From Mobula hypostoma (taxonomy: Eukaryota): a stretch of DNA of 64,000 nt. The notes under the pieces were generated by a model that made no database searches, was not told where the DNA came from, and saw only the letters and a list, made by a program, of their open reading frames with translations. The stretch lies in the NCBI RefSeq assembly GCF_963921235.1, contig NC_086110.1, positions 13,206,001 through 13,270,000 on the forward strand, written 5' to 3'. Shown here piece by piece: positions 1,528-61,071 of this stretch; the first letter of the stretch is position 1, and every line of letters begins with the position of its first letter. Position numbers and translations under genes: made by a program.

Positions 1528-1821
1528 CTCCTCCAACTCCATTGGAAATTGTTCCTGTTGGAGGGTTTTCGTTTCCTCGAAAGCTCCTTTGTAAAACGGC
1601 TGCCTTCTACCCGGAGGAACTAGAAATCGTTTGGCAAAGAAATAACAAGCAAATTCGCACTGGAATAGAGAGTGTGAAAAACCGAAGCGTGGATGGCTTG
1701 TTCGAAGCTTTTCGTTTATTGGAATTCACGCAGTCTACTTGGGAAAAAGATGTTTACACCTGCCTGGTGTCGCATGGCTCCCTCACGGTGCCTGCCAGTT
1801 TCCGCTTCGTCCAGGACCAAG
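1528..1821 (+). CDS. Gene A, Ig C1-set domain exon (phase 1-1)
   Basis: tcaag|CT...CAAG|gtaaga; 294 nt; xPPTPLEIVPVGGFSFPRKLLCKTAAFYPEELEIVWQRNN...VYTCLVSHGSLTVPASFRFVQDQ; C1 hallmarks CxxxxFYP, W, YxCxVxH; paralogous to 47140-47436. Confidence 0.93.
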
Positions 1822-2428
1822 GTAAGATAGTGTCTTGATGAAGTCATGATGTTGGATCTCGGCCTTAAACGTCGACATTTTAGATCTGCCTGATCGGCTG
1901 AATTCCTCCATTTTATGTGTTATTCTGAATTTCAGCATGTCCAGAATCTTCTGTGCTCAATGTAAATGGAAGTCTTTACAAGTCATAGTTTGTGGGTTAA
2001 ATGTGACCTTGTTAAGAACAGTAACTGAACAGCTACCCAAACACGGAAGAATGACTAATTTTGAAGTTTAGTAATTGACAGGGAATATTAAACGTGAACG
2101 GTGTTCAAAAGTTAAAGTGTTATTCCCGTCGGTGTTAATCGTGTAGGAAGAATCAAGAAATTGAATTCCTGCAATATTTGTAAGATAGCAAACGTTTGAA
2201 CATTTGCTAAAAATATGACAAAGCAAAACTTAAACTCTAAAAGACATAGTAATATAACAAAGGTGAGAATATGCATTTCGTATCTTACGATATATTTCCC
2301 GATCGTGTGTACTGAGATTTGAAACGAGCCTGTAAAATATTTTGGATTGTTGATTCTCATGTGTGCATTTGTTTTTAGATGAAGAAATGCTTCATAGTTT
2401 CTTGTTTTTCCCCCTATTGATCCACAAG

Positions 2429-2527
2429 GCGCTGATACTAAATTGATTCTCTCATATACACTGAAGGGATTGGCAATTTTAGCACTGATAATGGTTTTGG
2501 TGACAGTCAACTTCAAGAGATCGCACG
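2429..2527 (+). CDS. Gene A, transmembrane exon with intramembrane Lys
   Basis: Pyrimidine tract + cacaag|GC...CACG|gtaaga; phase 1-1; GADTKLILSYTLKGLAILALIMVLVTVNFKRSH; aligns without gaps to the gene B TM exon over the TM segment. Confidence 0.85.
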
Positions 2528-3124
2528 GTAAGAACGATGATCGCTGAGAAACATCACCACTATTCGTCCAAACAGATGCGTTAATGATATTTAACTGCAA
2601 AAGAGTAAATGCCCTTTACAAAATGACTGGACATGGATTGCGATTTTCGAAGTCAGACTCAGTGATAATACTCAGTTACAATAGAAGGTAGATCTTAAAA
2701 TTCAACTATTTCATCAGTCCACTCGAAGTATTACACATCTCATTCACAAATGCTTTTCTATGATTTTGGAGTTCTTCAACTGTTTTAAGTGCAATGGCAG
2801 ATCTATACTTTGAAGCGTAAAGAACACTGTCGAGCTCGTGCATGTCTCATTGATTTTAATTTCCATTTGAGCGACAGTATTTAAGTGTAGTACGGCCACT
2901 GATATACTATTATCACTTTATAGCTTCGTTAAAAGTCAAAGTTTATTGAGCATAATGCCATGAGGTTGACGCGGAACACACTGTATTCGGACAATTGATA
3001 TCACCAAATGCTTTCTGAAATATCCGTACCTTGCGCAGTTCGTCTTACACAATGAATTCGATTCGTATCAAACGAATAAAGTCCAATTTTTACAATACAA
3101 ATAATTTATTTTATTTTTCTTAAG

Positions 3125-3168
3125 GGATTAACAGAAGTTCTTCGAACAGATGTCAGAATGAGGAGCCG
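3125..3168 (+). CDS. Gene A, 44-nt cytoplasmic exon (phase 1-0)
   Basis: tttatttttcttaag|GG...CCG|gtaggt; GINRSSSNRCQNEEP; bridges the phase-1 TM exon to the phase-0 terminal exon; same length and donor as 54877-54920. Confidence 0.8.
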
Positions 3169-5234
3169 GTAGGTGAACTGGATCGTCTTCTTTCAGAGCC
3201 ATGTATACGCATAGTAGAGATATTATAAATTTATTTTGTTCCACAACATTTTGGAATGCAGTAGGGAAGAATGAAACCATTCTGTCTGACGACTTTTTTT
3301 ATTTTGAAGTATATATCCAAGATGTATTTGAATATTCCTGTTGAATATGCTTCAAATCGTCTTTGAGGATTTAACACCAGTTCATAACCGGTTGCATTAA
3401 GGTGCACGGTAATAGTAACTAATGGAAGTTAAGCTGTTACTCATACTTCGTGTGACGAATAATTAAATACAAATCTAAGACTAGGATGTTTTAGATGTAA
3501 AATGTCGGTTTACGAGAATTGCGATGTAGTGGCAATCGGAAAATACAGTACACGCACGAATCATTTCGCAATATATGTTACATTTGATTTGAACGCACAG
3601 TAAGCAAGATTAAAAATGCAATGAAATCTTGCTTTGGAACGTAATATGCAGTTTTTAACCCCGATTCCCAACAAAGATTCACACAGCAGTGCATAACCTG
3701 CAATGTAATCGAATATGCTTCCAATTAAATCTTGTACTATCTGGTGCACAATGATACCCAAGCGAAACTCCACAATACACCTTCTACTCCACGGGGCTAC
3801 GCTGAACGATGATCATCCTCAATTTGGAAAGAAATGCCTGAAACATATAAATGTATTGTCATCTCCCATTTTGGATTCAAACCAGATATTAAAAACCTAT
3901 AACGACATCTTTGGAGGGAGAAATAGTTGTTCCTTCAGATTGAACCCCCTTCCCCAGAAAGCAACGTAAATGTTAGCTGTTTCTCTTTGCTCTCGTGTTT
4001 CCTGATCCACCGTAAGTTTTATTTATTGATAAATAAAGCATATTCAAATTTCAAATTTACAGCAGTTTAATGTTATTAAATTTGTCCCACCGGGATTCTC
4101 CTAACAGCATATATTAAATATTTATCGGTTGTATACCCATCTGTCTATAACTGGAAACGTCTTCTTGTGTTCCATTAATCGCCTTCCCAATTTTAGCACA
4201 TATTTTTACTTTTACGTAACAATAGCTGCTGCAGCAACTTTTCACATCACCAAAACAAGAATGTCATATATAATACTGGTTTTATTATAGTAGAATTCCG
4301 TAAGTACTTTCATCAGTGTTCGTAGCACTTCCTGGAATGAAGGACTGCTAATGCGAGTAATACCTAAGTTGAAGCTAGAACATTCAAGATAACATTTTTA
4401 CTGTTGTTGTATTGCTCTGGTATGCTATGTCATTGTTTCAGCCAAAACAAATGCTATTTTAACTATTTACTTTAACGGGCATGTCCAACTGCTCTAATTA
4501 TTTCAATCGTAGTTTAATTGATGCATTAGTAAAACCAATCACCTCAACAGCGGGCAAGATGCCTCTCCCATATTTGCTGCCTTAATTACGTAAGTACATC
4601 AGGTCTTGCCATTTGTTTCAAGGTTCATAACTTAAATAATGCGAGCTTTAAGGGTCAGAGGTTCGAATTGCACCGAGGGGACGAAATCTGGTCATGCCAA
4701 TCATTACAATTATTTGACGGGGTGTGTAAGGGAAACGGATCGGATAAAACCCATGCAAAAAAAAACTTAGAGGATCGTAACTACAGATATGACAAAAAAA
4801 AAAGAAACAAAAGAGATGGCCAGAACTGAGAAACGCCTCGATAGATAGGAAGGTTTTAACTGGTTTGGAAATCTAATGTACACATAGCGATTTCCCGCCT
4901 GAAATGGATTTGGTATCCCACTCCTATAAGATATGCGGACAATATTTTTGTGCGCAGCCAAAATGTTACTCCAACCATTTAAAATGCTTTTCTATGATTA
5001 CATGTTCCGAATCGAACTTAGTTCATGGTCACTGACCTCTGTAATCGTTAGCAGTATTAAATGTGTTTTCTCTAGCAGGCTGAACAAGGAGCGGTTGAGC
5101 ACGCCACTGCTTATAATTCACTAAATATGAGGGAGAGCACAGGATTTCGCAAAGATCGACAACAAGAAGTGCGCATTATCTAATCTCAGGTAACGCCGAC
5201 AGATTAGCTTGAATAACATGAATTTGGTTTTGAA

Positions 5235-5472
5235 ATATAGCACTGTAACAGAGCCATCCGGCAGAACTAGTTCGTCCCGCCCAATTACACCCATGTGACC
5301 AATTAGCATACTCAACAGTTCGTCTTTGGAATGTGAGAGGAAGTCAGAGCGCCCGAAGAAAACCGTACGGTCATGGGGAGACGAACAAACACACTATTTA
5401 GGGGCGGAAATTCAACCTGGATCACTGCTGCTGTAATACCGTTACGCTAGCCTCTACGCCATCGTGCCACCC
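5235..5472 (-). mobile_element. tRNA-derived SINE (HE1-like), degenerate
   Basis: Minus strand begins GGGTGGCACGATGGCGTAGAGGCTAGCGTAACGG, with a B-box-like GGTTGAATTTCC; truncated homologue at ~24640-24775. Confidence 0.6.
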
Positions 5473-5503
5473 AAAATGTATATAAGACCAACATATATTT
5501 GAA

Positions 5504-6195
5504 CATTATTAGATTATGAGAACGCTCAGTCCCTTTTTATTAACATTTAGAAATGCATACATGCATTAAGAAATGATAAAATGTTTCTCTGGAGTGATAT
5601 CACAGAAAACAAGACAGACCAAAGAACACTGACACAACCACATAATTATAATATATAGTTACAGCAGTGGAAAGCAATACCATAATTTGATAAAGAATAG
5701 ACCATGGGCACAGTAAAATAAAGTCTCAAAGTCCCGAGTCGATCAACTCCTCAGTCCCCGATAGCAGGCGGCAAAAGGGAGAAACTCCCTGCCATAAAAC
5801 TCCAGGCACCGTCATCTTGCCGATTTCTTGGAAGCAGCCGATCCTAGCCGACACTGAGTCCATCCGTTCGAAAACTCCGAGCTTCCGACCAGCCTTTCCG
5901 ATACAGCCTCCCGAGAGCCATCCTCTGCCGAGCGGCTTCGACCTCTCCCCAGCCGCTGAAACACGGAAAGCCGAGGATTTCCGGGCCTTCTGCTCCGGAG
6001 ATATCCGGTTACCACACAGCACCAACGGCAGCGAAGCAGGCATTTCAGAAGCTTTCCAGGTGTTCCGCTGTTATCTCACGTCTGTCTCCATCAAATCAGA
6101 ATTGCTCACGGTCCCCTACTTGACAGATAACAGTTTTTCTTCACCGAAGTGGCCGCGGGCGCTGTCGTCACGACGCCATCTTCTCCCCCTCCCGG
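5504..6195 (-). mobile_element. Unclassified ~0.7-kb non-autonomous retroposon, copy 1
   Basis: Reverse complement of the GGAGAAGATGGCG... element at 14081-14765 and 24841-25535; TAATC-type tail. Confidence 0.75.
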
Positions 6196-6299
6196 GGGGC
6201 TCATTTTACAAAACTGAGCAGACATTTGGCACTTTAACAAAATGTAGACTGCACCAGAGCTCACCCTCTTTCACCGAAAATGAACCTGGTACCATTTAC

Positions 6300-6820
6300 A
6301 ACTGAACGCTCTCGAAATATAATCACCTTTTACTTCAGTCCGGGTCGACTCCAACCTGAAGGCATGAACATTGATCTCTCGAACTTTTGAACTATTTCAT
6401 CATCCCCCTTCTCTTTTTTCCCTATTCCTAATTCTGGCTTCCTTTCACCTTTTCTCTTCTCCCCATCTGCCCATCACTTCCACTGGTGAGCCTCCTCCTT
6501 CCATTTCATCCAGGGTCCACTGTCACCTTCTAAAAGATTCCTTCTTGCACCCTTTTCCTTTTCCACCTATCACCGTCCAGCTTCTACGTCATTCCATCCC
6601 CGATCATTCACACAGTTTCTTACTCACCCGGTTTCTCCTATCACCTGCCATCTTGTACTCTTTCCACACCCTGTTATTCTAGCTTCTGACCACTTCTTTT
6701 GCTGTCCTGATGAAGCGCTTCGGACAGAAACGTCGACAGTAAGCCTTCATACATGCTGCCTTACCTAATGAATTACATCGGCATTTTCTTGCATTTCTCA
6801 AGATTTTCAGCATCTACAGG
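6300..6820 (+). mobile_element. Degenerate Penelope 3' end/pLTR
   Basis: LQPEGMNID-like end, C/T-rich tract, CTGATGA...GAAACGTCGAC motif at 6702-6739. Confidence 0.75.
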
Positions 6821-7466
6821 AACCCTCGAGATTATCTTTTTTCCATTGCTTTTACGAATTTAATTTCATATGTTATGTGCAAACGAGGAAACACTAAAAA
6901 GCATGAAACTAGATATAGCCATCCTTTCCAACGCCTATTACCAGCTCCATAATGGACATGAATAACTGATCCAACCGAACTTTGGTGTTATTCATGGAAA
7001 TATCGAACAGTGACAAAACAGTAACCATACGGCATGGATCATGACAGTGTCTGTGAGCATTTGGAGTTCTGCAGGAAACACCCGGAAGATCTCTTGACTG
7101 AAACGTTTGCGGCAATCAGACACATATAACACAAAAAAATGCGCTTGCATTTTGAGGTAGAGAAATATTTTGTACTATACCTGTTTAAGGAGTTACCTAC
7201 TCTCCCAAGTCGATTTTGTTAAAATTTATTTCAAGTAAGGAAAGAAACGCTTATATTTCAGTGGGACGACACAGGTTCTTGGAGTTGAAATACCACATGA
7301 ATCAAAAAGCAAAATTTTGAAAAAAAAGGCATAAACTTTGTGTAAAGTGGCAGACACCTAAAATTGAAAACTTATTAGTGCATAACTAATTTATTTTATA
7401 ATTTTTGTTTCAATTTGTCAACTCGATGATTGTCGATTAACCACTAATTTCAAATTATTTTCACAG

Positions 7467-7598
7467 ACTAAAAGAAATGGAGCTGACGATCTGGCTTACG
7501 CCGCTCTGCAGCTTCCCGATTCCAAGAACACCTCAGCAGCCGAACATCAAAACCAACATATATTGTATACAGATGTAAATGCATCAAGGAAACTGTGA
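7467..7598 (+). CDS. Gene A, terminal cytoplasmic exon with two ITIMs
   Basis: ttattttcacag|ACT...TGA; TKRNGADDLAYAALQLPDSKNTSAAEHQNQHILYTDVNASRKL*; LAYAAL and ILYTDV both fit (I/V/L/S)xYxx(L/V/I). Confidence 0.82.
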   Translation, partial: TKRNGADDLAYAALQLPDSKNTSAAEHQNQHILYTDVNASRKL

Positions 7599-7791: not shown

Positions 7792-7797
7792 AATAAA
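7792..7797 (+). promoter_or_regulatory. Candidate polyadenylation signal of gene A
   Basis: AATAAA about 195 nt after the stop codon. Confidence 0.45.
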
Positions 7798-23650: not shown

Positions 23651-23777
23651 TTTGAAAATCTAAACATAAAGACTTCCAGCCTGAAACCGTCGAGATCCCA
23701 TCTCCGGTATAATGTATGGACTTTTTTATTGTGCGCAGACAAAATGTTAATCCAACAATTTGTTTATCCTTGTTGTC

Positions 23778-24483: not shown

Positions 24484-24840
24484 GTTTAGGTTTTACAACT
24501 CTAAGTTAGTTTATGATCACTTCGCTAACCTGAACCACAGGGAGAGCAAACCATTTCGCAAAGATCGACAACAGGTGGACCGCGTTATCTATTCCCAGAT
24601 AAAGCAGAGAGATTAGGGTGAATATGATACAGATTTTAATTAGAGATATACCACGGTAACAGACCCTTCCGGTGCATCTAGTCCTTGCCGCTCAGTCACA
24701 CCCATGTGACTAATTGACCTCCTAACCTGAACGTCTATTGAATGTGGGAGGAAATCGGAGTACCCCAGGAGGCTCATGTTTATATATATAATCATCATCC
24801 AAGAGGAAATTAGTTTTACAAAATTGAGGATACCGAACGT

Positions 24841-39712: not shown

Positions 39713-39748
39713 AGTCGACGTTTCAGGCCGAGACCCTTCGTCAGGACT
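39713..39748 (-). ncRNA. Minimal hammerhead ribozyme motif (Penelope type)
   Basis: Minus strand AGTC-CTGACGA-AGG(GTCTCGG)CCT-GAAAC-GTC-GACT. Confidence 0.75.
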
Positions 39749-41031: not shown

Positions 41032-41067
41032 AGTCCTGACGAAGGGTCTCGGCCTGAAACGTCGACT
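41032..41067 (+). ncRNA. Minimal hammerhead ribozyme motif (Penelope type)
   Basis: Stem I AGTC/GACT, core CTGACGA, stem II AGG/CCT, GAAAC, GTC cleavage triplet. Confidence 0.75.
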
Positions 41068-44000: not shown

Positions 44001-44631
44001 ACTAGAATATAGAAAACGCCCCTTGCGAATTCGGAACGGTCGTAGGGCGACATGTGGAAGTGGTAAAGGACTGAATGAGAAGGAATCTGACAGGGGAGGA
44101 TATTGGATCATTGGAGAAAATGAAGGAGGAGCAGCATCAAAGCGAGGTGAGGCGAAGAGAAGGGATAAAAAGGGACCCAGAATGGGAAATAGAAAACGAT
44201 GAAAAGTGTACGAGAGAAATTACTGAAAGTTGGAGAAATCAATGCTCATGTCAGCAGGTTGGAGGCTGTAGAGAAGGAATATAAATCCACCTATCAAGTG
44301 CCATCTCTTTACCTCCCCCTCCCCCCACTAATCACCTGCCAGTTTATGCGCCTTTCCCTCCCCTATTTCCTTTTTGTGACTTCATCCCCCTTTCTTTCCT
44401 GTCATGAAGAAGGATCTTACTCCGAAACATCGACTGTTTGTTTTTCACTATTGATGCTGCCTGACCCACTGAGCTCCGGTAGCACATTTTGGGCTTTCCT
44501 CGGGATTTCTGCAGAATTTCTTGTATCCAAGGCATCGACATAGCCTTGACCATGTGACTTCATAAATAATGATCACTTGCTTATAATATCCTATGAATTC
44601 CTAACTTTCAGGTAAACCACTCTCATTGGCA

Positions 44632-44686
44632 ATGTCGTTGGATGCAAACGTTTGGTGTTTGGCTCTTCTCGCCGCGTTTTGGCCAG
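44632..44686 (+). CDS. Gene B, leader (signal peptide) exon
   Basis: ATG...CCAG|gtacgc; MSLDANVWCLALLAAFWP, phase 1; in frame with the V exon. Confidence 0.8.
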
Positions 44687-44860
44687 GTACGCTTAATGTT
44701 TTGTGCCCAATCTACGAATCAAATATGCTATAACATTATACATTTGATACCCCCAGCAAATTTAGCTGTTGCAAATATCCATTTTTCTGCCTATTTTGTC
44801 TGTTGATTCTTTGTACAGTGTGTGCAACTGTCTTCATCATTTTCACTTATGCTTTCTCAG

Positions 44861-45166
44861 CCGCAAAAGTGACTTCGGCCAAAGTGGAACAATTCCCTCC
44901 AATCTTAAACGTCCCAATCGGTGGAAATGAATCCATGTTCTGCAAATTTCCAATATTACAAGATACTGCTGAAGTTTCGTGGTGGAAGTCGGGTCAGAAG
45001 GCACTTATAGAACCAGACAGCAGAAATCAGTTCAATGTGAAGAAAGGCAGGGGGACATTTACCCTCCTGAATGTGAGATATGCGGACGCCGGCTTGTATT
45101 ACTGTCAAGTGAAAAGTCAACAACAAATATTCGGAAATGGAAATGGCTCTCAGCTTATTGTGTTAA
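44861..45166 (+). CDS. Gene B, single-exon VJ-type Ig variable domain (NKp30/NCR3-like spacing)
   Basis: gctttctcag|CC...TTAA|gtaagt; 306 nt; MFC...SWW...DAGLYYCQVKSQQQIFGNGNGSQLIVL. Confidence 0.95.
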
Positions 45167-45924
45167 GTAAGTGTCTTTATTCCTGGAAGTAGAAAATTTT
45201 CATCGCTTTGCATTTTAGCAAAAGCAAGATTGCGGAAATGTTGTGAAATGGTATTAAGATTAATGCTGGTTTAGGATTTGTGCAACTAGTATGCTTTATA
45301 CCTTTCAAAAAAGAAAAAAAATATCATTTTGGCCTTTTTTTCGGATTGTTCTGTTTATTACTTCGATGTGCTTCTGGAGATTGGTTTTTGCTCCACTTAT
45401 TATTTGGACCGTTACTATTTCCAACCATATCTTTGTTATGCCTATATTCCTACACAACGCCCCACCCTGTGCCGCCTTGACCTATTGCTCAACGAGCCCT
45501 AACAACTTTAAACAATCAAAAGCTTTAAACAGCGGATGAACTGAACCACTGAATTTTTAGACGACGAGTTTGATTCGGGTTAGCTCATTCGATATAGGGA
45601 GCTGTGGACAAGTTGCGTTGAAAGCAAATCACAAGCCAACGAAGTCAAAGCGAAGCATTGTCGAGGTTAAACGACATTCGCCCATTCTTCATCCCGCTTT
45701 TATACATATCGACGTATTTCGCCGATTTCGTTCCAGTAATTGCTTAAACGCATAGCTACAAATATTTATAAGTAATTAATAAACATCGTTCAGTCTGCCA
45801 AACACTCGAAGAACTTTTGCGGAACGGTGAACATCGAAACACCGTAATCAACGGTTCGGTAAATTCACTGAGGAACATATTCACCTTCCATCTGAAGCCC
45901 AAAAGCAAACAAAGCCACTTCATT

Positions 45925-46710
45925 AATATAACCATGTAACCATATAACAATTACAGCAAGGAAACAGGCCATCTCGGCCCTTCTAGTCCGTGCCGAACTC
46001 TTACTCTCACCTAGTCCCATCAACCTGCACGCAGCCCATATCCTCCATTCCTTTCCTGTCCATATAGCTGTCCAATTTAACTTTAAACAACACCGAAACT
46101 GCCTCAAAAACTTCTGGTGGAAGCTCGTTCCACACGGCTACCACTCTCTAAGTAAAGTAGTTACCCCTCATGTTACCCCTAAACTTTTGCCCTTTAACTC
46201 TGAACTCATGTCCTCTTGTTCGAATCTCCCCCACTCTCAATGGAAAAAGCCTATCCACGTCAACTCTATCTATCTCCCTCATAATTTTAAATACCTCTAT
46301 CAAGTCCCCCACCCCCCGCCTCAACCTTCTACGTTCCAAAGAATAAAGATCCAACTTGTTCAACCTTTCTCTGTAACTTAGGTGAAAATTCTAATAATTT
46401 TGCTCTGTACTCTCTCTATTCTGTTGACAACTTTCCTATAATTCGGTAATCAAAACTGTACACAACACTCCAAATTTGGCCTCACCAATGCCTTGAATAA
46501 TTTCAACATTACATCCCAACTCCTATACTCAATGCTCTGATTAATAAAGGCCAGCATACCAAAAGCTTTCTTCACCACCCTATCCACATGTGATTCCACC
46601 TTCAGCGAGCTATACACTATTCCTAGAATCCTCTGTTCTATTGCATTCTTCAATGCCCTACCATTTACCATGCATGTCCTATTTTGATTAATCCTGCCAA
46701 AATGTAACAA
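45925..46710 (-). mobile_element. CR1 3' fragment in the V-C1 intron
   Basis: Minus ORFs LYSLERRRL and KAFGMLAFI. Confidence 0.85.
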
Positions 46711-47139
46711 TAACGGGACGTATGTGTAAAACCTCTACAGTGAGAAACAAAGCTTGCTCCGTCTGCTGCTCCACAATGCCGATCCCATTGAAACCAGCAT
46801 AGTTATGCAGATTCACTGACTCTCATTTTGCGTTAATACAAAATTGAGCAATGAAGAGGCAGAAGTTGGAACAAATATTGTCTGTTTGAAGAAGAAATGA
46901 AGTCAATCCCAGCACGCGCTAAGTCTGCCGCGTTCATTCCAAACAGCTGTGCGTTCCCCACCTGACACCAGCACATCTATGTTGTCATGTTTATTTGCCT
47001 ACTGAAACAATTAATAACTGACAAATTCATGCGATTTCAAACCACCGCAATGATAGCATTGAGAGTGGTAGCTTAAAACAGAGAATACGTTCGATCAAAT
47101 AATAGCTAAATATTCTACGTCGGTGTTATTATTTTGTAG

Positions 47140-47436
47140 CTCCGCCGACTCCTCTGAAAATCATTCGTGTTGAAGAAGGATCACCTAAATCCCGGAAACT
47201 CATGTGTAAAACTGCAGCATTTTATCCTAAGAAATTAGACGTCTTTTGGCGAAAGAATAATATGGAAATTCTCACCAAAATAGAAACGTCAATACATGAG
47301 ATTTCAGAAGGATTTTATGAGGCTTCCAGTACTTTGGAAGATGCGCAGCCTGCTCAGGGAAAAATGGTTTACACCTGTCTGGTAACTCACGAAACGCTCC
47401 AAGTTCCTGCCAGTTTCAGCTATATTATCGAAGAAG
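47140..47436 (+). CDS. Gene B, Ig C1-set domain exon
   Basis: attttgtag|CT...GAAG|gtaaga; 297 nt; PPTPLKII...CKTAAFYPKKLDVFW...VYTCLVTHETLQVPASFSYIIEE. Confidence 0.95.
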
Positions 47437-47629: not shown

Positions 47630-50600
47630 AGGAAAGAGATCATGATGAGGGATTTTGAGCAGCTAGGGACTAACCTGAAAAGCATAATCGAAAAAAGAGG
47701 TAATGTCTAGATTACTGCCTGAGCTACGTGCAAATTGGCACAGGGTTAATAAGGTTAGACAGTTAAATGCGTAGCTCAGAAATTGGAGTGGGAGATGTGG
47801 GGTTGAATTCATGGGAATCTGGCACCAGTATTGAGGGAGCTGCTTCATTCGGACGGGCTCCACCTGAACCGTGATGGGACCTGCATCCTGGTGAATCACT
47901 TAACTAGGGTTGTGGATAGGGTTTTTAAAGTATGTAGCATGGGGGTTGGTTCATTAGATTGGAGAAGTATGGATAAAATAAAAGTGAAAAGTGTGGATAA
48001 CGATAAAGTAAAAGCAAAAGATAAAAAAGAGAAAAGTGAGGGTAGAATGCAGAAAAGTAAAGCACATAAAAGACAAAGATCACTAGATTTTAAAGGCACA
48101 ATGCCTGTAAGGGCATTTTATCTGAATGCTCGTGCTATCCGGAACAAGGAGAGTGAACTTGTGGCACAAATCAGTATAAGAGCGTATGATTTAGTGGCCT
48201 ATACAGAACCGTGGTTGCAGAATGGATATAACTGGGAATTAAATACCCAAGGATATCCGGTGATACGGGAGGATAGGCAGGAAGGTAAGGGAGGTGGGGA
48301 AGCGCCCTAAATTAAAGATGAGAGCAGGGCGATAGAGAGAGACAATATAAGATCTCAGGAGCAGAATGTTGAATCCGCCTGGGTAGAGATTAGGAATAGT
48401 AAAGTGAAAACAAACGTTGGTGGGAATTGTCTATAGGCCACCGAATAACACAATTACAGTGGCACGGGCAATAATCCGAGAAATATCAGAGACATGTAAG
48501 AATGGAATAGTAGGTATCGTGGACTTTAACTTGCACATGGATTAGGTGAATCAAGTTGGTCGAGGCAGTCTTGAGGAGGACTTGTGAGAATCGAAACATG
48601 CTAGCTTTCTTCAACAGCATGTTGCTGAACCTACAAGGGAACATGCTATCTTGCATCTAGCGCTGCGAAATGAGACAACTAAAATTACCAATCTTGTCGT
48701 TGGGGATCCTCTTGGAAAGAGTGATCACAGCATGACTTTCTTATACACATGTAGGGCGCAATAATTCGATCTAACACCAGTATATTATACCTACGAGGGC
48801 GACAACAAAAATGATGAGAGAAGAGATGTATAATGTCAATTGGGAATACAGGCTATATGGTGGGACGTTTGAAGAACAGTGGAATACTTTCCAAGAGATT
48901 CTTCACGATGCTCAATAGCAGTATATTCCAGTTAAAAGCAAGGACAGTAAGTGCGGGGAGAGCCAGCCTTGGATAATGAGGAAATTAAACGATAGACAAT
49001 AGACCATAAGTGCAGGATTAGGCCATTCGACCCTTCGAGCCAGGACCGCCATTCACTGTGATCATGGCTGATCATCCACAATCAGTATCCAATACTTGTC
49101 TTATCCCCATAACACTTTGATTCCGCTATCTTTAAGAGCTCTATCCATCTCTTTCTTGAAAGCATCCAGAGACTTGGCCTCAACAGCCTTCTGGGGCAGA
49201 GCATTCCATACATCCACCACTCTCTGGATGAAAACGTTTTCCCTGAACTCCGTTCTAAATGGCCTACCCCTTATTCTTAAACTGTGGCCTCTAGTTCTGG
49301 ACTCATCCATCAGCGGGAACATGCTTCCTGCCTCCAGCGTGTCCAATCCCTTAATAATCTTATATGTTTCAATAAGGTTCCCTCCCAGCCTTCTAAATTC
49401 CAGAGTATACAAGTCCAGTCGCTCTAATCTTTCGACATATGACAGTCCCGCCAACCCGGGAATTAACTTTGTAAACCTACGCTGCACTCTCTCAATAGCA
49501 AGAATGTCCTTCCTCAAATTTGGAGACATAAACTGCACACAGTACTCCAGGTGTGGTCTCACCAGGGCCCTGTACAGCTGCAGAGGGATCTTTGCTCCTA
49601 TACTCAATTTCCCTTGTTATGAAGGCCAGCATGCCATTAGCTTTCTTCACAGCCTGCTGTACTTGCATGCTTGCTTTCAATGACTGATGTACAAGAACAC
49701 CTAGATCTCGCTGTACTTCCCCTTTTCCTAACTTGACTCCATTTAGATAATAATCTGCCTTCCTGTTCTTACAACGAATGTGGACAACCTCATATTTATC
49801 CACATTAAACTGCATCTGCCCACTCACCCAGCCTGTCCAAGTCACCCTGCATTCTCATAACATCCTCCTCACATTTCACACTGCCAGCCAGCTTTATGTC
49901 ATCGGCAAATTTTCTTATGTTACTTTTAATTCCCTCATCTGAATCATTAATATATATTGTAAACAGCTGCGGTCCCAGCACTGAACCCTGCGGTACCCCA
50001 CTGGTCACCGCCTGCTATTCTGAAAGGGACACATTAATCGCTACTCTTTGTTTTCTGTCAGCCAGCTAATTTTCAATCCATGTCAGTACTCTGCCCCCAA
50101 TACCATGTGTCCTAATTTTGCCCACTAATCTCCTATGTGGGACTTTATCAAAGGCTTTCTAACAGTCCAGGTACATTACATACACTGGCTCTCCCATGTC
50201 GATTTTCATAGTTACATGAAGGCATCAAAGAAGGCATCAAACTAAATGCTAGTGCGTAGAAAGTGACCACGAGTAGTGGGAAACTGGAAGACTGGGAAAA
50301 CTTTAAAAAGCAACAAAGAACCACTTAGCAAGAAATGAAGAAAGGGAGGATAGATGATGAAAGTAAACCAGTATAAAATATTAAAACGGACAGTCAAAGT
50401 TTGAATAATTATATAAAGCGGTGTCCAAAGTGAACGTAGGTCCCTTGGAGGACGAGAAGGGGAATTGATATTGGATAATGAGCAATTGGCCGAGGCTTTG
50501 AATGACTATTTTGTGTCGGGTTTCACCGTGGAGGACACGCCTAACGTGCCGAAGAGAGATGCTATGGATGCAATGGGAGGTGAGAACCTCGATACAATAG

Positions 50601-52220: not shown

Positions 52221-54250
52221 ACGAAATTCCTGCATTCATTCATAGCCTATTACATAAGAAGCACTCCGATATATATTTAAAAATATTAAATCAGAAAAAA
52301 CACAAATACCAAAAGAGGTATTTCGACAGATGTCGAGGTACATGGTCGATGAAGTAGATTTTATCATTACTATTTTCCATGAGGAAATGTGAAAAAGGTA
52401 AGGTCTTGCGTGGAGTTCAACAAATCATCGGGAATATGATTTTCTGGTTGCAGAGTGGTGTTCTGCAGGGGCTGGTATTGGAACTATTTCTTTTTCCACG
52501 ATGTATCAATAATTTTAATGACGGAATTGATCGCTTTGTGGCAATAGTTTCAAAAGAAGGTGGGGTAATATAAAGTATATACTCCAGCAGAATTACTGTA
52601 ATAACGACCTGTGATAATGGCATGTATATGCACTCTGGAGTACAATGCAATTCTATTTCTTTTCCTATTAGTCCAACCCAGCTTTAGTTTCCTGAAGATT
52701 GAAATTTCTTTGAGACTGCCAGAAATTTCACAAATAAATGTTGTGACCGGAAGATCTCTTTATAATGGCCATCACTTATATTTTTATGTAATATTACTGA
52801 CACCGAAAGCAAATGACATGGATGTCATATTATATCGAATACAGTTCAGTTCCATTACTTTCTCTATCCAATTGACCGTTGCATACGTTTGTGGAAAGTC
52901 AACTATTTTCCGTCGTGCACTTTTTCGCTAATCTTTAGTCATTTGTTGGATAAAAATCAAGATTTACAAATGGAAGATCCTGAAAAATTGAGTATTTGAT
53001 AACCCTGGGTAAAATAATTTGAAAAATATGTTTTACTTTGATAAATTGTGTGTAAACGACATACAGTATGTTTGCATTAACTAAAATCTCAAGCGAGAAA
53101 TAGAATATGTAATTAGAAGATCAGGAATGATGTGAACATTACCTTTTGCACGGTATATCAGCATGACAAAAGACAATTTTATGTAAGGTTGTTCAAAAGG
53201 TTCTGTGAATTGAGAATACGATACGTAGATAGGATTCTCGCTGAGAATATTAAGAGGCAGTTTCCTTCGGCCAGATGTAGATTCCTTGTCGTGATAAAAG
53301 TCGGTCCTGAGAGATTTCTTCACTCTGTTGGAAGATCTTTGTAAGTTCAGAATCGACGCAGCTGAACAGTGTAGGAGAAGATTAAGCAAAATTTTGGAAG
53401 TTGGTCACGTTTGCAAATAGTCAAATCATATTTATGTTTCAAATGTTTATAATTGATATTTAACTACATCCATTGTTCCATATTCTGCTCTTTTTTTTTA
53501 ACTATTTGCGCAGTCCTACGTCTTTTGCTACCTCTGCATTTAAAACTGGAATTCTGTCGGCAAGTGTCTTTGTTGCATTACTTAATCAAAACCTGCCCGT
53601 TTGTCCACCCCCCCCCCCCCCAGGTTTTAACCAGGTATCTTGTCGCTTCTCATATATGGTTCGGATTATGCTTTTTAATATTCTATTAATGCATCTTGTA
53701 ATGTTTTGTGAAAGTAAAAAGTAATTTTCTCTTGTTTGCCAGTAGGATCTACTGAGACAGTTTTCGAGTGACAGTTTGGAAAGAAACGATGTCATTTCGA
53801 ATCTGCCATCAAACTATCTACAAAGGCATCGTAAAAAGATAAACTCTCTTAATTCAAATAAAAAAATACTTACTGTAAAGAACTAAAACACAAACAAGAG
53901 AATATCTGTAGATTCTGGAACTGCAATCAACACACACAAAATGTTGCAGGAACTCAGCAGGCCAGGCAGCACCAGTCCTGCCAAGAGTCTCGCCCGAAAC
54001 GTCGACTACTTTTCTCCACAGGTGGTGCCTGGCCTGCTGAGCTATTCTGGCATTTCGTGTGTGTTGCCCTGGAAAGAACCACGATGCAAGATTATCTGTT
54101 CGCTCCATAAGTCCTATCATGACATTAAAACTCGTGTCATACTGCGTCTCTTGCCTGAATTACCAATTAAACTACTCTAATTTCTTGTCTCACGGTCTCT
54201 GTAAATTTATATAAGTTTCACAGCTTCTTCTTTTTTTTTACATGGTCCAG

Positions 54251-54353
54251 AAGACAGGAATAAACCTTTGATTCTTGGATGTGCATTGGGCGGAGTGGCA
54301 ATTGTAATTCTGATTATAATTTTGGTAACAAGCGGAGTTAAGAGAAAACGGTG
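54251..54353 (+). CDS. Gene B, uncharged transmembrane exon ending in phase 2
   Basis: T-rich tract + gtccag|AA...CGGTG|gtaaga; EDRNKPLILGCALGGVAIVILIIILVTSGVKRKR; an alternative in-frame acceptor at 54222-54223 is possible. Confidence 0.85.
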
Positions 54354-54876
54354 GTAAGAACATGAATGATTTGACAAGTATTTCAATTTATTACCTCTAC
54401 AGAATGAAAAGAGAGATGATAATGAAAGAGTCAAGATTTCCAAGACATTACCCAGTTCATATTGGTCAATACTAATTATAAATAACAATATAATTTTACA
54501 TTCCCGTTCAAGTTATCCGATCATCCCTTGCACCTACGATTTTCAGTCACTTGGGGTTTTCAGGCCGTGACTTCCAGCGGCGAATTTACACAAGTAATAA
54601 TAATCTTTCTGCTGTAGGTTCGTTGTTTTGAGATATAACATGGCTGATACTATGATGCCACCACTCTGGCCTTTCAATCAAAATCTATATCCACCACATT
54701 CATTAAGGGTCATGCACAACACATTTCATGGCCACAATGTGCGCTGATACTATTTTGAATATCTGTCAAGAGTTGCAACTTTCGTCAAGAAATATGATTG
54801 CAATCCAATACGCAACTTTAAATTTTCTACCATTACCGCTATTATTTAAGTTGTTGTATAATTTTAAACCCATTAG

Positions 54877-54920
54877 CTATTAAAACAATTTCTGAGGAAG
54901 CAAGTCAGAGCGGAGAACTT
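54877..54920 (+). CDS. Gene B, 44-nt cytoplasmic exon paralogous to 3125-3168
   Basis: cattag|CT...CTT|gtaggtgaa; same length and donor context; xIKTISEEASQSGEL when read in phase 1. Confidence 0.7.
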
Positions 54921-54964
54921 GTAGGTGAAACAGCTTTTATTTTTGCTTCTGAGAACGATATATT

Positions 54965-56465
54965 AGCAACATAGAAAACCTACAGCACAGTACAGACCCT
55001 TCGACTCACAAGGCTGTGCCGAGCATATCCTTACCATAGAAATTACCTGGGGTTACCCATAACCTACTTTTCGGATCTCCATGTATCTGTCCAGGAGTCT
55101 CTTAAAAGACCCTATCGTTTCTGCCTCCCCGCCGCCGCCGGCAGCCCATTCCACGCACTCACCACTCTCTGAGTGAAAAAAAAAACTACCTATGACATCT
55201 CCTCTGTACCTACTTCCATGCACCTTAAAACTGGCCCTCTCGTGGAAGACATTTCAGCCTTGGGAAAAAGCCTCTGACTACCCACACGATCAATGCCTCT
55301 CATCATCGTATACACCTATATCAGGTCACCTCACATCCTCCGTCACTCCAAAGAAAAAACGCCGAGTTCACTCAATCTGTTCCCATAAGGCATGCTCCCC
55401 AATTCAGGCAACATCTTTGTAAATCTCCTCTGCAACCTTTCTAAGGTTTTCACATCATTCCCACAGTGACGTGACCAGAACCCAGCATCGTACTCCAGGT
55501 GTGGTCTGACCTGTGTTCAATATAGCCGCAACATTACCTCTTGGCTCCTAAACTGAACTGCACGATTGATGAAGGCCAATGCGCCGTATGCTTTCTTAAT
55601 CAAAGTGTCAACCTGCACAGCAGCTTTCAGTGTCCTACGTATAGACTCGGACCCAAATATTCTTCTGATCCTCCACACAGCCAAGAGTCTTAGCATTAAT
55701 ACTATATTCTGTCATCACACTTGACCTACCAAAATGAAATACCTCACAGTTATCTGGGTTGAACTCCATCTGCCACTTCTCAGCCCAGTTTTGCATCCTA
55801 TCAATGTCTTGCTGTAACCTCTGGTAGCCCTCCACAATATGCACAACACCTCCAACCTTTGTGGCATCAGCAGACTTACTAACTCACCCTCCACTTCTTC
55901 ATCCAGGTCATTTATAAAAATCAGTAAGTATAGGGATCCCAGAACAGATCCCTGAGGCAGGCCACTGGTCACCGACCTCTACGCAGAATATAACCCGTCC
56001 TCAACCACTCTTTGTCTTCTGTGAGCAAGCCAATTCTTGATCCACAAAGCAAAGTACCCTTGGATCCCATGCCTCCTTACTGTCTCAAGATGCCTTGCAT
56101 GGAGTACCTTGTCAAATCCCGTCCCCATTGATGATGCAAATATCATCGCCAGAGGCTCATCAGTCTCCTCCCTCGCCTCCCGCAGTAGCCTGGTGCACAT
56201 CTCGTCTGGTCCCGGTGACTTATCCAATTTGATGTTTTCCCAAAGGTCCAGCACACCCGCTTTCTTAACATCTCCATGCTCATGCTTTTCAGTCCGCTGT
56301 AAGTCATCTTTACAATCACCAAGATCCTTTTCTGCAGTGAATATTGAAGCAAAGCAGTCATTAAGTACCTCTGCTATCTGCTTTGTCTCCATATACACTT
56401 TAGCACTGTCACACTTGATTGGTCCTATTCTCCAACGTCTTATCCTTTTGCTCTTCACATACTTT
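54965..56465 (-). mobile_element. CR1 LINE, degenerate, internally deleted
   Basis: Minus ORFs SGLPQGSVLG and KSKRIRRWRIGP. Confidence 0.85.
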
Positions 56466-57999
56466 TTGGTAGAGGAAGATTATGATCAATTACAACCTAG
56501 GCATGGATATGTCTGTGAGTGCATGAGAACCGATGACAATCTGAGCTGTACAACGCTGCTTCAATGGTCCGTAGTTCCCGAGGAGTACAAAGGTGACAGT
56601 TGTCCCTGCGTAAGCTGTTGGGGAAAGGAGGAAAAAGCAAATAACTGCTGAAGGAAAAAAAATGGTGACGAGAAAGCTAAATAGCATGGGAACCAGGGTT
56701 AGCCAGGCGACTGAACACGACAGCACCGAATTAGTTTAGTATAATATCAGAAGGTGATAGTGGAGATTTCCTATTCAAAAATGAAGGCCTGCAATTGCTG
56801 ATGTACTGAATAGGGCAGTTCAGGTTTCAGTACTGTTTGTCATTTAGTTCCGAACCACCTAAGAGGATAACATTGTTAACATCTTTAATACCTTCGGGGA
56901 GGCAACGAAATTCCTGATGCAATAGAATGCAAAAGCTAACCAAGACAATAAACTGGGAAATGCTCCTTCAATTTCAGATATGATTTAACTTGGACAATGG
57001 CGAAGTGTTGCATTTTAGTTGGTTAAAATAAATCTGGAATTACACAGTAACTTGCCCTGGGGTTTGAAGTAGAACGCAGGGACTGAGGGCAAGTGGCGAC
57101 GAAGGTGGACAGAATGGTACAGAAGGTGTTTGTCACAATTGACACAACAGTGGGGACAATGTGTGCAGGGTCTGGACTGTCCTGTTATACTATACACGTC
57201 GTTAGTGAAACACGAAGAGTATTCTGTGCGTTACTGATCGCCCAGCTATAGAAAACTCATGACAGTCCTTAACACAGTGCAGAAAGGACTTAGGAGTTTG
57301 TTATAAGGACAGCAAGCTTTTAGCTGTAGCGAGAGACTGGGGCTATTCTTTCATGAGTACAAGAGGTTGAGAGATGACCTTATATAGGAATATAAAGTGA
57401 CGAGGGGGGTAGGCAGACCTAGGTTACAGTTTTTTACCCAGGATAGATTAATAGAAATCAGAATACAGCAATTCAAAGTGTGATAGAAAATATTTAAAAT
57501 GGCTCTAGGGAAGGTTTTCAACAAATAGGAGCTTGGTAAAAGTAAAATGTACCAGATGGGTTCGGTAGCAATGTGTGCAATACAGTTAGATTGGTATGTT
57601 AAGTAATGTTGAGACCAAAAGGATTTCAAGAGACAAAAATGGTCCTCTGGGAGACCAGAATGATAATCTACGCATGGAGCCAAAAGAGAATGGGGAGATC
57701 TTAAATGTATTTTTTGATCTGTATTTACTCGGGAGATGGACACAGGGTCTGTAGAAGTGACGCAAAACAACATTGAGGCCATGGTCTTGTATTTCCTCAT
57801 TCGAATCTAAGAAAATTCCGTCTAGGACGAAAGGGAAACCAGCATGACTTATTACTGTATGCTCCTTCTTCCCTTCTCTTATCTCCAGCTATCTAAGGTA
57901 CTCTCCGTCCGATCCAACACGTTACCTTTAGTCCCCAGTATAGTTACTTTCCGCATATGTCAAACATTTTCTCCAAATGCTCGTTAAAGAGTATTCACA

Positions 58000-58760
58000 T
58001 CAGTAACAGAAGAAATTTTCCAGAGTTGCAGGCAATCCAGAACAACACACACAAAATTGTAAAGAAACTTAGCCGGGAATGAAGCATGTATGGAAGAGAA
58101 TAAACAGTCGATGTTTCGAGCCAAGACCCTTCATTAGCATTGGAAAGGAAGAGGGAAAATGCCAGAATATAAAGATGGGGGAGTGGAAGTAGGTCCAACT
58201 AGAAGTTCATGGTTAAACCCAGGTGAGTGGGGGAGAGGCGATGAACTAAGAATCTGGGAAATGACAGAAGGAAAAGGAAAATACTGTAGAATAAGGAGTT
58301 TGATAGGATATTAAATTAGACCTTGGGAGAAAGGGAAGGAGGAAGGGCACCATAGAAAGGATATAGGTAGGTGAGGAGAAGAAGTAGGAGGCCAGAGTGT
58401 GGAACAGAAGAAGAGGGAAGGGAGAGAGAAAAATTAATGAAAGAAGAAATCCGTGTTCATGCCTCAGGCTGGAGGCTACCTGGACTGAAAATGAGGCGTT
58501 TATCCTCCACCCTAGGAGTAGCCTCATGGTGGCAGAGAAGCCGAGAACCAAAATGTCGAGACAAGAATGGGGATAGGAAGAACAATGACTGGCCACCGGA
58601 ATTTCCACTTTTTGTGGATGCAGTGGAGATGCTTGAAAAAGTGATCCGCTAATTTATGTTATGTCGCACCAACGTAAAGTTGGTCACGTCGGAAGTACCG
58701 GACAGAATAGACAAGCATAATAGATTCGGAGATGAATGTGTTGCCTCACCAGGACTGACT
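58000..58760 (-). mobile_element. Degenerate Penelope 3' end
   Basis: pLTR-like 58010-58140; minus-strand VASSLRHEHGF end motif. Confidence 0.65.
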
Positions 58761-59018
58761 ATTTAGGGCCCTGAACGGCGCTGAAAAATTATATATCTCA
58801 AGTATAATTTTCATGTTGTCTTGGCCTGACAGGAGCATTTTCCTTCTATTTGGATTTACATTTTTGATTCGAAACCAAATGCTGTCTTCACCCAGGGATC
58901 TGCTCACGTCAGTACAAGTTTAAGAACACTTCATAGTCATTTACAGAGGAAAGTCAGTCTAGAATCTATCTCAGTGTTGTAATTCATCACAAAAATAACA
59001 AAAAGCTTTTTTTCATAG

Positions 59019-59040
59019 CGAGTCCACTTCTGTTTTAAGG
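59019..59040 (+). CDS. Tentative 22-nt micro-exon of the gene B tail (phase 0-1)
   Basis: tttttttcatag|CGA...AAGG|gtatgt; would link the 44-nt exon in frame to 60953. Confidence 0.25.
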
Positions 59041-59084
59041 GTATGTTCAGATACATAGAAAAAAACATTGACAAATGTATTCTA

Positions 59085-60636
59085 TATACCTTAACGAGGT
59101 GGTTTTAGAAATCTTGGACGCATTGGTAATCACTTTCCAATGTTCTATAGATTCAGGATCAGTTCCTGTGGATTGGAGGGTGGCTAATATTGTGCCACTT
59201 TTCAAGAAAAGAGGGAGAGAGAAAACGGGGAATTATAGACCGGTTAGTTTGACGTCAGGAGTGGGAAAGATACTGGAGTCAATTATAAAAGATGAAATTA
59301 CTACACATTTTGATAGCAGTAACAGGATAGGTCCGAGTCAGCATGCATTTACGAAGGGGAAATCGTGCTTGTCTAATCTTCTGGAATTTTTTGAGGATGT
59401 AGCTATGAAAATGGACAAGGCAGAGCCAGTGGATGTATTGTACCTGGACTTTCAGAAAGCCTTTGATAAAGATCCACATAGGAGATTAGTGGGCAAAATT
59501 AAGGCACATTATATTGGGGGCAGAGTACTGACATGGATTGAAAATTGGCTGGCTGACAGGAAACAAAGAGTAGCGATTAACCGGTCGCTTTCGGAATGGC
59601 AGGCGGTGAGCAGTGGGGTACCACACCGTTTAGAGCTGGGACCGCAGCTGTTTACAATATATATTAATGATTTAGGAAAGGGTATTAAAAGTAAAATTAG
59701 CAAATTTGCGGATGACACAAAGCTGGGTGGCAGCTTTGAAATGTGAGGAGGATGTTATGATAATGCAGGGTGACTTGGACAGGCTGGGTGAGTGGGCAGA
59801 TGCATGGCAGGTGCAGTTTAATGTGGATAGATGTGAGGTTATCCACTTTGGTGGTAAGAACAGGAAGGCAGATAATTATCTAAATGGAATCAAGTTAGGA
59901 AAAGGGGAAGTACAACCAGATAGAGGTGTACTTGCACATCAGTCAGTGAAAGCAAGCATGCAGGTACAGCAGGCAGTGAAGAAAGCTAATGGCATGCTGG
60001 CCTTCATAACAAGGAGAATTGAATATAGGAGCAAAGAGGTCCTTCTGCAGCTGTACAGAGCCCTAGTGAGACCACACCCTGAGTATTGTGTGCAGTTTTG
60101 GTTTCCAAATTTGAGGAAGGACATTCTTGCTATTGAGGAGTGAAACTTAGATTCACAAGGTTAATACCCGGGATGGCGGGACTGTCATATGTTGAAATAT
60201 TGGAGCGACTGGGCTTGTATACACTGAAATTTAGAAGGATGAGGGGAGATCTGATTGAAACATATAGTATTATTAAGGGATTGGACACGTTGGAAACGCT
60301 GAAGGTAGGAAACATGTTCCCGCTGATGGGTGAGTCCATAACCAGAGGCAACAGTCTAAGAATAAGGGGTAGGCCATTTAGAATGGAGTTGAGGAAAAAC
60401 TTTTTCACCCAGAGAGTGCTGGATATGTGGAATGCTCTGCCCCAGAAGGCAATGGAGGCCAAGTCTCTAGATGCTTTCAAGAAAGAGATGGATAGAGCTC
60501 TTAAAGATAACGGAATCAAAGGTTATTGGGATAATTGAGGAACTGGATACTGATTGTGGATGATCAGGCATGATTACAGTGAATGGCGGTACTGGCTCGA
60601 AGGGCCGAATGGCCTACTCGTGCACCTATTGTCTGT
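59085..60636 (+). mobile_element. 5'-truncated CR1 LINE
   Basis: ORFs 59075-59746, 59706-60143 and 60140-60538 with RT motifs. Confidence 0.92.
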
Positions 60637-60952
60637 TAAAATTCCGACTAGATTCCATTATTTTCTGATTCAAATTAAAATAATTCTCAACCCTTCTCTA
60701 TGTATTCGCTAATGACAAGCTAGGCAAGGTTCTCGGCCCGAAAATTCAACTGTCCTTTCCTCTCCATTGATGCCATCTCACGCTTTGACCGCTGTGTAAA
60801 CAAAATGTTACTCTTGACATTGATATTGCTTTGAGTTTTTCTGTACTACTGTGTATAACTGATTCCGCAATCGATATAGCCAAAAATTAATATGTTAGAA
60901 TTGTACTTTTATTTTGACTTTCTGATGACCCTTTACTTTTTTGTCTTTGCAG

Positions 60953-61071
60953 AATGCTCAAGCTTTAGAATCGAAACACGGACGTTGCAGAACAACATGA
61001 GAAACTTTTATTTCGGAGGAAGAGGATTCGAAGTCACTTATTTTAGCATTGAGCCATTGTCTGTAACCTAG
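60953..61071 (+). CDS. Tentative terminal exon of gene B with ITIM-like VTYFSI
   Basis: Strong acceptor ctttacttttttgtctttgcag; phase-1 frame open to TAG at 61069-61071; AATAAA at 61086-61091. Confidence 0.35.

Follow-up and report, generated by a model that had tools for sequence, protein, structure and literature searches.

A gap-free stretch of 64,000 nucleotides (nt) from Mobula hypostoma (NCBI RefSeq assembly GCF_963921235.1, contig NC_086110.1, forward-strand positions 13,206,001 to 13,270,000), referred to here as the window and numbered from its first letter, contains two intact members of a large and apparently unstudied family of shark and ray receptors, together with fragments of at least one more. 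The proteins of this family would be type I receptors that consist of a signal peptide, a germline-joined variable-joining domain (V(J)), one C1-set immunoglobulin (Ig) domain, a transmembrane segment and a variable cytoplasmic tail. The reading favoured here, with a probability of about 0.68, is that the family is SIRP-like, that the first of the two genes (gene A) encodes an activating-type receptor with a truncated tail, that the second (gene B) encodes a tail-less receptor, and that the two are not a matched pair. In gene A, a lysine in the transmembrane segment would couple the receptor to an adaptor bearing an activation motif of the immunoreceptor tyrosine-based kind (ITAM), and a stop codon within a 111-nt cassette exon would cut the tail before a still intact exon that encodes immunoreceptor tyrosine-based inhibitory motifs (ITIMs). 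The predicted protein of gene B ends just after the stop-transfer residues KRKR, an extra base putting its transmembrane exon in phase 2. Gene A belongs to a clade whose expansion took place in stingrays and devil rays, and gene B to an older batoid lineage.

Genes A and B are placed by their sequences in a discrete V(J)-C1-transmembrane family. A profile of both C1 domains searched against 1.84 billion representative proteins returned 259 matches below 1e-10. Rescoring by domain with a hidden Markov model (HMM) of the C1 domain separated members of the V-C1 family, at 94-144 bits, from all other C1 domains among the top 150, which scored 52 bits or less and came from Ig heavy chains, major histocompatibility complex (MHC) class I, and multi-C1 proteins of lungfish and coelacanth. 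Family members made up 108 of the proteins fetched, nearly all family proteins have the V-C1 build, and every strong match was chondrichthyan. All named members are from Mobula, Hypanus, Hemitrygon, Narcine, Pristis, Amblyraja, Heterodontus, Heptranchias, Chiloscyllium, Scyliorhinus, Mustelus, Cetorhinus and Callorhinchus. An exhaustive C1 search revealed no bony-vertebrate protein above generic C1 scores, and a full-length profile search, in which candidates were preselected by shared words, yielded no other convincing relative, the best outsider being a MAG-like protein of sturgeon at 52 bits. In the databases searched, the family thus appears to be restricted to Chondrichthyes. Automatic NCBI names for its members are inconsistent, and include SIRP-alpha-like, NCR3LG1-like, Ig-lambda-like, TCR-beta-like, PD-L1-like, MHC class II-like and tapasin-related; even near-identical proteins carry conflicting names. 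No paper on the family was found in the literature searched. In the flanks (~10 kb) of the Callorhinchus member, the only gene found was another family member.

Exon models for the window were obtained by tblastn with shark and ray family proteins (P0003 and the M. birostris protein P0165) as guides, after which splice sites were read directly. A motif scan of stop-free stretches placed both C1-type exons and the sole V-type exon on the plus strand. The window holds only the 3′ part of gene A, from C1 onward, with the leader and VJ exons lying outside it. The C1-set exon (1528-1821, plus strand, 294 nt, phase 1 to 1), whose product is 97% identical to the corresponding domain of P0165, matches the Pfam C1-set family with an E-value of 1e-12, a far better fit than to C2-set_3, the B7-type IgC (0.03). 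It is followed on the same strand by a stalk/transmembrane exon (2429-2527, 99 nt, phase 1 to 1), in which the lysine codon, AAG at 2464-2466, lies within the hydrophobic span, one third of the way in. The cytoplasmic part begins with a 44-nt exon (3125-3168, plus strand, phase 1 to 0), located by tblastn with P0003 and P0165 and bounded by AG and GT, and continues with the 111-nt cassette exon (5079-5189, plus strand, phase 0 to 0), which encodes the motif TAYNSL and has good AG/GT splice sites. The last exon (7467-7598, plus strand) is an intact open reading frame (ORF) that encodes LAYAAL and ILYTDV, motifs resembling ITIMs or the related switch motifs (ITSMs), and ends in the stop codon TGA. 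The earlier note had placed the tail directly after the 44-nt exon and missed the 111-nt exon, which contains an in-frame TAA at 5181-5183, giving ...QQEVRII-TAA-SQ where paralogues have ...RIIYSQ with a tyrosine. Because the TAA precedes it, the last exon can be translated only when the 111-nt exon is skipped.

Gene A has most probably arisen from an inhibitory ancestor and become activating in type, and the truncated-tail form has somewhat better than even odds of being its main product. The M. birostris model P0165 has the same transmembrane lysine and terminates at the residue where gene A has its TAA. The model P0179 from Hemitrygon akajei, whose status as an orthologue of gene A and P0165 is not settled by the C1 tree, stops at that residue too, with an aspartate where the lysine would be. 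A charged transmembrane segment and a truncated tail common to devil-ray and whiptail-stingray models argue against recent decay of gene A, and suggest instead a state that has been maintained. The opposite charges found at this one site (lysine in P0165 and aspartate in P0179) could mean that the two proteins have different partner chains.

A tentative alternative, given clearly less than even odds, is that gene A is mainly inhibitory, the stop-bearing exon being normally skipped so that the product combines the transmembrane lysine with the LAYAAL/ILYTDV tail. The intact ORF of the last exon with both of its motifs is in keeping with this proposal, as is the preservation of the reading frame on skipping, which follows from the phase 0 to 0 boundaries of the cassette. 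P0164, an isoform of an M. birostris paralogue, is precisely such a product, with the 44-nt exon joined directly to the ITIM exon and the 111-nt exon left out, so the skipping form, which is the exon model of the earlier note, is a real isoform type in the family. The good splice sites of the 111-nt exon nevertheless point the other way, and both P0165, which was the one NCBI model of the M. birostris orthologue to be retrieved, and Hemitrygon P0179 include the exon and end at its stop. Furthermore, nearly all members of this family with a charged transmembrane segment have lost the ITIM tail. The activating-type interpretation of gene A is therefore preferred, with an inhibitory-tailed isoform produced by cassette skipping regarded as possible.

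For gene B, RNA evidence comes from contigs of three runs, designated X1, X2 and X3, of which X1 is from a close relative and is 97-98% identical to the window. All exons of the gene lie on the plus strand. A 5′ untranslated exon, of which at least 42353-42449 is represented, is joined in an X1 contig to the leader exon (42445>44608, GT..AG). The leader exon (44612-44686), delimited by RNA joints, has its ATG at 44632 and ends in phase 1. It is joined in X1 contigs, again with GT..AG, to the V(J) exon (44683/6>44858/61), and the V(J) exon (44861-45166, 306 nt, phase 1 to 1) is joined in turn to the C1-set exon (45166>47140). In the V(J) exon the framework runs through YYCQV into the J-like FGNGNGSQLIV with no break, so that V and J are germline-joined in one uninterrupted exon that is spliced as a unit in RNA, which bears out the germline-joined arrangement proposed earlier. 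Pfam places this exon among Ig_3, I-set and V-set, as a short, I-set-like domain. The C1-set exon (47140-47436, 297 nt, phase 1 to 1; Pfam C1-set E-value 4e-9) is spliced straight to the stalk/transmembrane exon (54251-54353, 103 nt, phase 1 to 2), since a single 856-nt X1 contig has 47330-47436 contiguous with 54249/51-54353; its remaining 646 nt map outside 54354-60149. RNA from the related species thus joins leader, V, C1 and transmembrane exons of gene B in the predicted order, and for gene A no RNA run is listed. In run X3, a separate contig of 251 nt (depth 4.2) links the gene B leader (44620-44686) directly to the transmembrane exon (54247-54353) and skips V and C1. Both of its junctions are in phase 1, so this transcript would encode a signal peptide and a transmembrane segment with no Ig domain, and it may be splicing noise.

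The leader, V and C1 exons and the entry into the transmembrane exon are all in phase 1. The exit from the transmembrane exon differs between the genes, being in phase 1 in gene A (99 nt) and phase 2 in gene B (103 nt). An assembly error as the source of the extra base in gene B was ruled out by RNA contigs from all three runs, which cover the 103-nt exon without a gap. The encoded transmembrane segment has no charged residue and carries a cysteine at its outer edge. Three continuations beyond this exon can be considered. Splicing to a candidate 3′ terminal exon (60953-61071, plus strand), the homologue of the tail exon in the Hemitrygon isoform P0172, gives TG+A, that is, an immediate TGA; splicing to the homologue of the 44-nt exon (54877-54920, plus strand), which has zero depth in the RNA contigs, would give Cys-Tyr-stop; and reading through the donor gives Arg-Trp-stop. 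Because all three stop within 0-2 codons, the cytoplasmic part of gene B hardly extends beyond SGVKRKR. The likely continuation is the exon at 60953, the join itself being inferred, and position 61071, at which the earlier note had ended its gene cluster, is the stop of this candidate exon in the phase-1 reading. Gene B looks like a tail-less receptor of the SIRP-gamma kind, and such a receptor might serve in adhesion or as a decoy, or might signal by way of a partner chain.

The arrangements proposed for the two genes fit a pattern that is apparent across the family. Among the 108 members, long tails with LTYAxL and xxYAxV go with an uncharged transmembrane segment, and members with a short tail frequently have R, K, D or E in that segment. 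Long-tailed members, with ITIM/ITSM-like tyrosines, would presumably recruit SHP phosphatases, short-tailed members with a charged transmembrane residue would presumably couple to an ITAM adaptor, and some members have neither an ITIM tail nor a charge. Nothing of use on DAP12 in cartilaginous fish emerged from a search of the literature. The transmembrane lysine of gene A, together with a nonsense codon that precedes an intact ITIM exon, exemplifies how signalling can change within the family, as does the one-base phase change of gene B that removes the tail altogether, and decayed copies have been left behind. A transmembrane lysine with a nonsense codon before the ITIMs is a route known from KIR and SIRP-beta. 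In a separate instance, two Mobula proteins, P0169 and P0173, have an ectodomain of the gene A clade, 82-85% identical to gene A in C1, but a gene-B-type transmembrane segment containing an arginine (ILIFRSALGG) and a short tail, a combination suggesting that the A and B lineages have exchanged exons. Among the members in the C1 tree, the ITIM tail is absent in 14 of 15 with a charged transmembrane segment versus 16 of 40 with an uncharged one (Fisher p 5e-4), but the association between charge and tail comprises only six phylogenetically independent contrasts, for which a sign test, of low power, is not significant.

The small number of contrasts is one of several points that weigh against the reading favoured here. 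The RNA evidence for gene B is from a related species rather than that of the window, and runs labelled with the window's own species have no depth on gene B exons. The transcript contigs differ from the window at 12 places across the gene B coding region (44632-47436), and 10 of these differences are nonsynonymous, which fits relaxed constraint or fast adaptive change; the contigs could also be from a paralogue. For gene A no RNA run is listed, its ITIM exon is still intact, and P0164 shows that family transcripts can omit the 111-nt exon, so a gene A product with both the transmembrane lysine and the ITIMs is possible. In addition, no sequence evidence groups the family specifically with SIRPs.

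Some of these points, namely the excess of nonsynonymous differences and the lack of listed RNA for gene A and, in runs carrying the window's species label, for gene B, would also be expected if one or both genes were dying copies in a decaying locus, with the nonsense codon in gene A and the frame-disturbing extra base in gene B as symptoms. Decayed fragments between the genes lend this interpretation some further support. A partial duplicate of the 3′ part of gene A (21577-26646, plus strand) is colinear with 3593-7256 at 65-74% nucleotide identity and is a copy of gene A introns and the 111-nt exon. Its pseudo-exon (24521-24604) has lost the 5′ half and has a donor changed from GT to AT, and it keeps TAT where gene A has TAA. 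An inverted duplicate of the gene B 3′ region (34423-36246, minus strand) matches 60938-62746 and includes a pseudo-exon (36178-36240, minus strand) with a 2-nt deletion. The V, C1 and transmembrane exons of the two genes are, however, all open, with canonical cysteines, tryptophans and splice sites. In the sister species, transcripts of gene B are present and properly spliced, with the extra base in place, and the stop and charged transmembrane segment of gene A recur in the M. birostris model, as do the same stop and an aspartate in the Hemitrygon model. Decay of either gene is thus considered unlikely, and the favoured reading is retained.

The same fragments bear on the history of the locus. 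The earlier note had placed a third, decayed unit between the two genes; decayed copies do lie there, as two fragments that contain no V, C1 or transmembrane exon. Neither tblastn nor the family HMM, applied to all six frames of the window, found a third V, C1 or transmembrane copy, and only exons of genes A and B scored with the HMM. The proposal of a birth-and-death multigene family has fared well, given lineage-specific expansions, the decayed fragments, and the nonsense codon and phase change that have altered the tails.

Within the C1 tree, gene A pairs with P0165 in a clade of 22 members that holds stingray and devil-ray sequences only, and gene B clusters with P0005 of M. hypostoma and P0010 of Hypanus, Narcine being sister to this group. 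The two clades fall within a single batoid clade nested among shark members. The split between the A and B lineages predates that of the electric ray Narcine from stingrays. The tail of P0005 was sought in the window and gave no match. The C1 domains of genes A and B are 48-49% identical, a measurement within the 45-50% estimated by eye at the outset, and the V domains, compared through P0165, 52%; by contrast, P0165, the orthologue of gene A, shares 81-86% of V and 80-86% of C1 with the ITIM-bearing proteins P0162 and P0164. Members of paired type therefore exist at the level of the family, in the form of P0165 (transmembrane lysine, truncated tail) and ITIM-bearing P0162/P0164, whose ectodomains are close. 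Because these identities within the A clade are so much higher than the roughly 50% between A and B, the natural inhibitory counterpart of gene A is another gene of its own clade and not gene B.

The shared exon order that had been proposed for the two genes (leader-VJ, C1, transmembrane, 44-nt exon, tail) is upheld for the exons and their phase 1 boundaries as far as the entry into the transmembrane exon, and for the homology of the 44-nt exons. Beyond that point it breaks down, as gene A has the additional 111-nt exon, the gene B transmembrane exon exits in phase 2, and the 44-nt exon of gene B is without RNA depth. That the transmembrane and tail modules differ was correctly recognized, one gene having a lysine and a stop before the ITIMs and the other being uncharged and tail-less. 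The further suggestion that A and B are a couple of paired receptors has not survived. In its strongest form, it would have them bind the same ligand with opposite signals, gene A inhibiting through two ITIMs and gene B serving as an uncoupled or activating partner. The two genes are indeed linked, on the same strand and of the same architecture, their tails differ, and the family includes both inhibitory-type and charged-transmembrane members. Yet the ectodomains are only about 50% identical, with the V domain of P0165 being far closer to those of ITIM-bearing paralogues elsewhere, and the lineages separated before Narcine and stingrays diverged. Gene B, which lacks a charged transmembrane residue, does not qualify as a classical activating partner, and gene A itself has the lysine and the stop before its ITIMs. 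A matched pair is accordingly held to be highly improbable. Genes A and B are better viewed as old batoid paralogues that became neighbours through birth-and-death evolution.

Genes of the non-rearranging VJ-C1 type hold a central place in the debate on the origin of antibodies and T-cell receptors (TCRs), and to our knowledge only a few such families, SIRP, PRARP and UrIg, have been described. The closest working analogue of the present family is probably the SIRP alpha/beta/gamma group. In SIRP genes too, the V domain does not rearrange and has a J-like G strand, and it precedes C1-set sequence and a transmembrane segment; SIRPs similarly come in ITIM-tailed forms, short-tailed forms with a transmembrane lysine or arginine, and forms with neither tail nor charge. 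In the tails of the present family, the motifs LTYAxLxL ... xxYAxV are reminiscent of the tyrosine pairs of SIRP-alpha. SIRP proteins differ in having two C1 domains (V-C1-C1), whereas each gene here has one C1 exon, joined to the transmembrane exon in RNA for gene B. The two also differ in that the V domain here is short and I-set-like by Pfam, and in that the present family was limited to cartilaginous fish in the searches made. SIRP-like C1 domains of lungfish reach 27-43 bits on the family HMM versus at least 94 for members, and their position in the C1 tree is unsettled. As the domain number fails and sequences give no specific grouping of the two, the family is filed with paired Ig-like receptors rather than as SIRP.

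An AlphaFold model of the V-C1 ectodomain of gene B type (predicted local distance difference test, pLDDT, 90.7) retrieved Ig kappa and lambda, SIRP-alpha/beta, TCR-beta, TAPBPR, B7 proteins and butyrophilins in Foldseek with similar E-values, the lowest being those of Ig kappa (8e-13) and Fab light chains. The best two-domain superposition was on domains 1 and 2 of SIRP-alpha/beta (TM-score 0.76-0.79, root-mean-square deviation 3.7-4.2 A). Light chains reached a TM-score of only 0.42-0.47, because the angle between V and C differs, being extended in the model and not elbowed, and B7/butyrophilin models reached 0.62-0.70. For a model of the window V domain (pLDDT 92), the nearest structures form the VJ-type group of CD79B, CD8-beta, Ig-kappa V, NCR3, TCR-alpha V and CD7. 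NCR3 (E-value 6e-8, TM-score 0.72-0.75) does not stand out, as CD79B, CD8-beta and Ig-kappa V are as good or better. Profile searches of the PDB were dominated by multi-domain proteins and do not tell the families apart.

Other known systems resemble the family in part. NKp30/NCR3 also has a VJ-type V domain, but joins it directly to the stalk and transmembrane segment with no C1 domain, and membership in NCR3 was rejected since a C1 exon is spliced in between V and transmembrane exons here. Ig light chains and TCRs share the V(J)-C1 order and phase-1 introns. They differ from the present genes, which have V and J in one exon and their own transmembrane segments and signalling tails, and the contiguity of V and J in a single genomic exon led to rejection of a rearranging receptor. 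PRARP reportedly has a VJ-C-transmembrane-tail build (VJ-C1-TM) in linked genes. These genes, from chicken and from bony vertebrates other than mammals, are cited (Fu et al. 2019, in PMC10751288) as non-rearranging VJ genes that are taken as relics of an antigen-receptor precursor. The supplement of the same paper lists at least five genes annotated as 'NCR3' next to AIF1 in the white-shark MHC (NC_054485.1, 101.9-102.3 Mb; PMC10751288). These may be true NKp30 genes or members of the V-C1 family, to which they could not be linked, none of the named proteins looked up being from that species. UrIg and UrIg2 are non-rearranging VJ-C1 genes of sharks (PMC12227049) and resemble the present genes in that cartilaginous fish encode a germline-joined VJ followed by C1. 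UrIg2, however, has a V-C1-C2-C3 structure like an antibody heavy chain (PDB 9dmx), in contrast to V-C1-transmembrane with signalling tails, and the best PDB match of the gene B C1 domain to UrIg2 involves the third of the UrIg2 constant domains and is no more than generic. Membership in UrIg was rejected on the V-C1-transmembrane build, which lacks the C1-C2-C3 series.

It might still be argued that the genes are plain orthologues of a described family of the same build, be it SIRP proper, chicken PRARP or NCR3LG1/B7-H6. NCBI names many members SIRP-alpha-like or NCR3LG1-like, and the superposition on SIRP-alpha/beta is the best obtained. These names conflict among near-identical proteins, however, and the single C1, joined directly to the transmembrane exon in RNA, does not fit SIRP. 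No non-chondrichthyan protein in the searches made rises above the generic C1 level, and the B7/butyrophilin superposition is worse. Such orthology is thus quite unlikely, and the interpretation as a SIRP-like family in its own right is preferred. The window supplies candidate receptors of rays, activating as well as non-signalling, that can be put to the test, and by itself shows no new mechanism. A bolder proposal, which is rated as unlikely, is that the family is a third surviving lineage of non-rearranging VJ-C1 precursors beside UrIg and SIRP/PRARP, that its proteins form dimers through the conserved Cys/Gly-rich outer edge of the transmembrane segment, and that gene A is a polarity switch operated by a cassette exon. 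If this were true, the lineage would have been kept only in cartilaginous fish, the stop-bearing cassette would have been conserved since devil rays and whiptail stingrays diverged, and its inclusion or skipping in gene A would decide between a transmembrane-lysine receptor with or without an ITIM tail.

The remaining intergenic and intronic DNA of the window is rich in transposons, including reverse-transcriptase (RT) ORFs and a Penelope-like element with RT and GIY-YIG domains. This element (39546-42216, minus strand; RT and GIY-YIG ORFs at 40041-42216) lies just upstream of the first exon of gene B and has a 370-bp inverted repeat that is 98.6% identical (39546-39914 with 40866-41235). An inverted pair of LINE-like sequences (48998-50217 and 59397-60637, 87.5% identical) is situated on both sides of the gene B transmembrane region, and further RT ORFs are found at 32340-33353 and 59075-59746. 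Within the decayed duplicate of gene A, an ORF at 23642-24289 matches Pfam ALKBH8_N (E-value 3e-11) and probably belongs to a retroelement, not to a gene of the host. Intronic repeats (in 45800-46800, 54950-56550 and 59150-60149) have summed contig depths in the thousands in all RNA runs; these are abundant transposon-derived transcripts and not exons of gene B.

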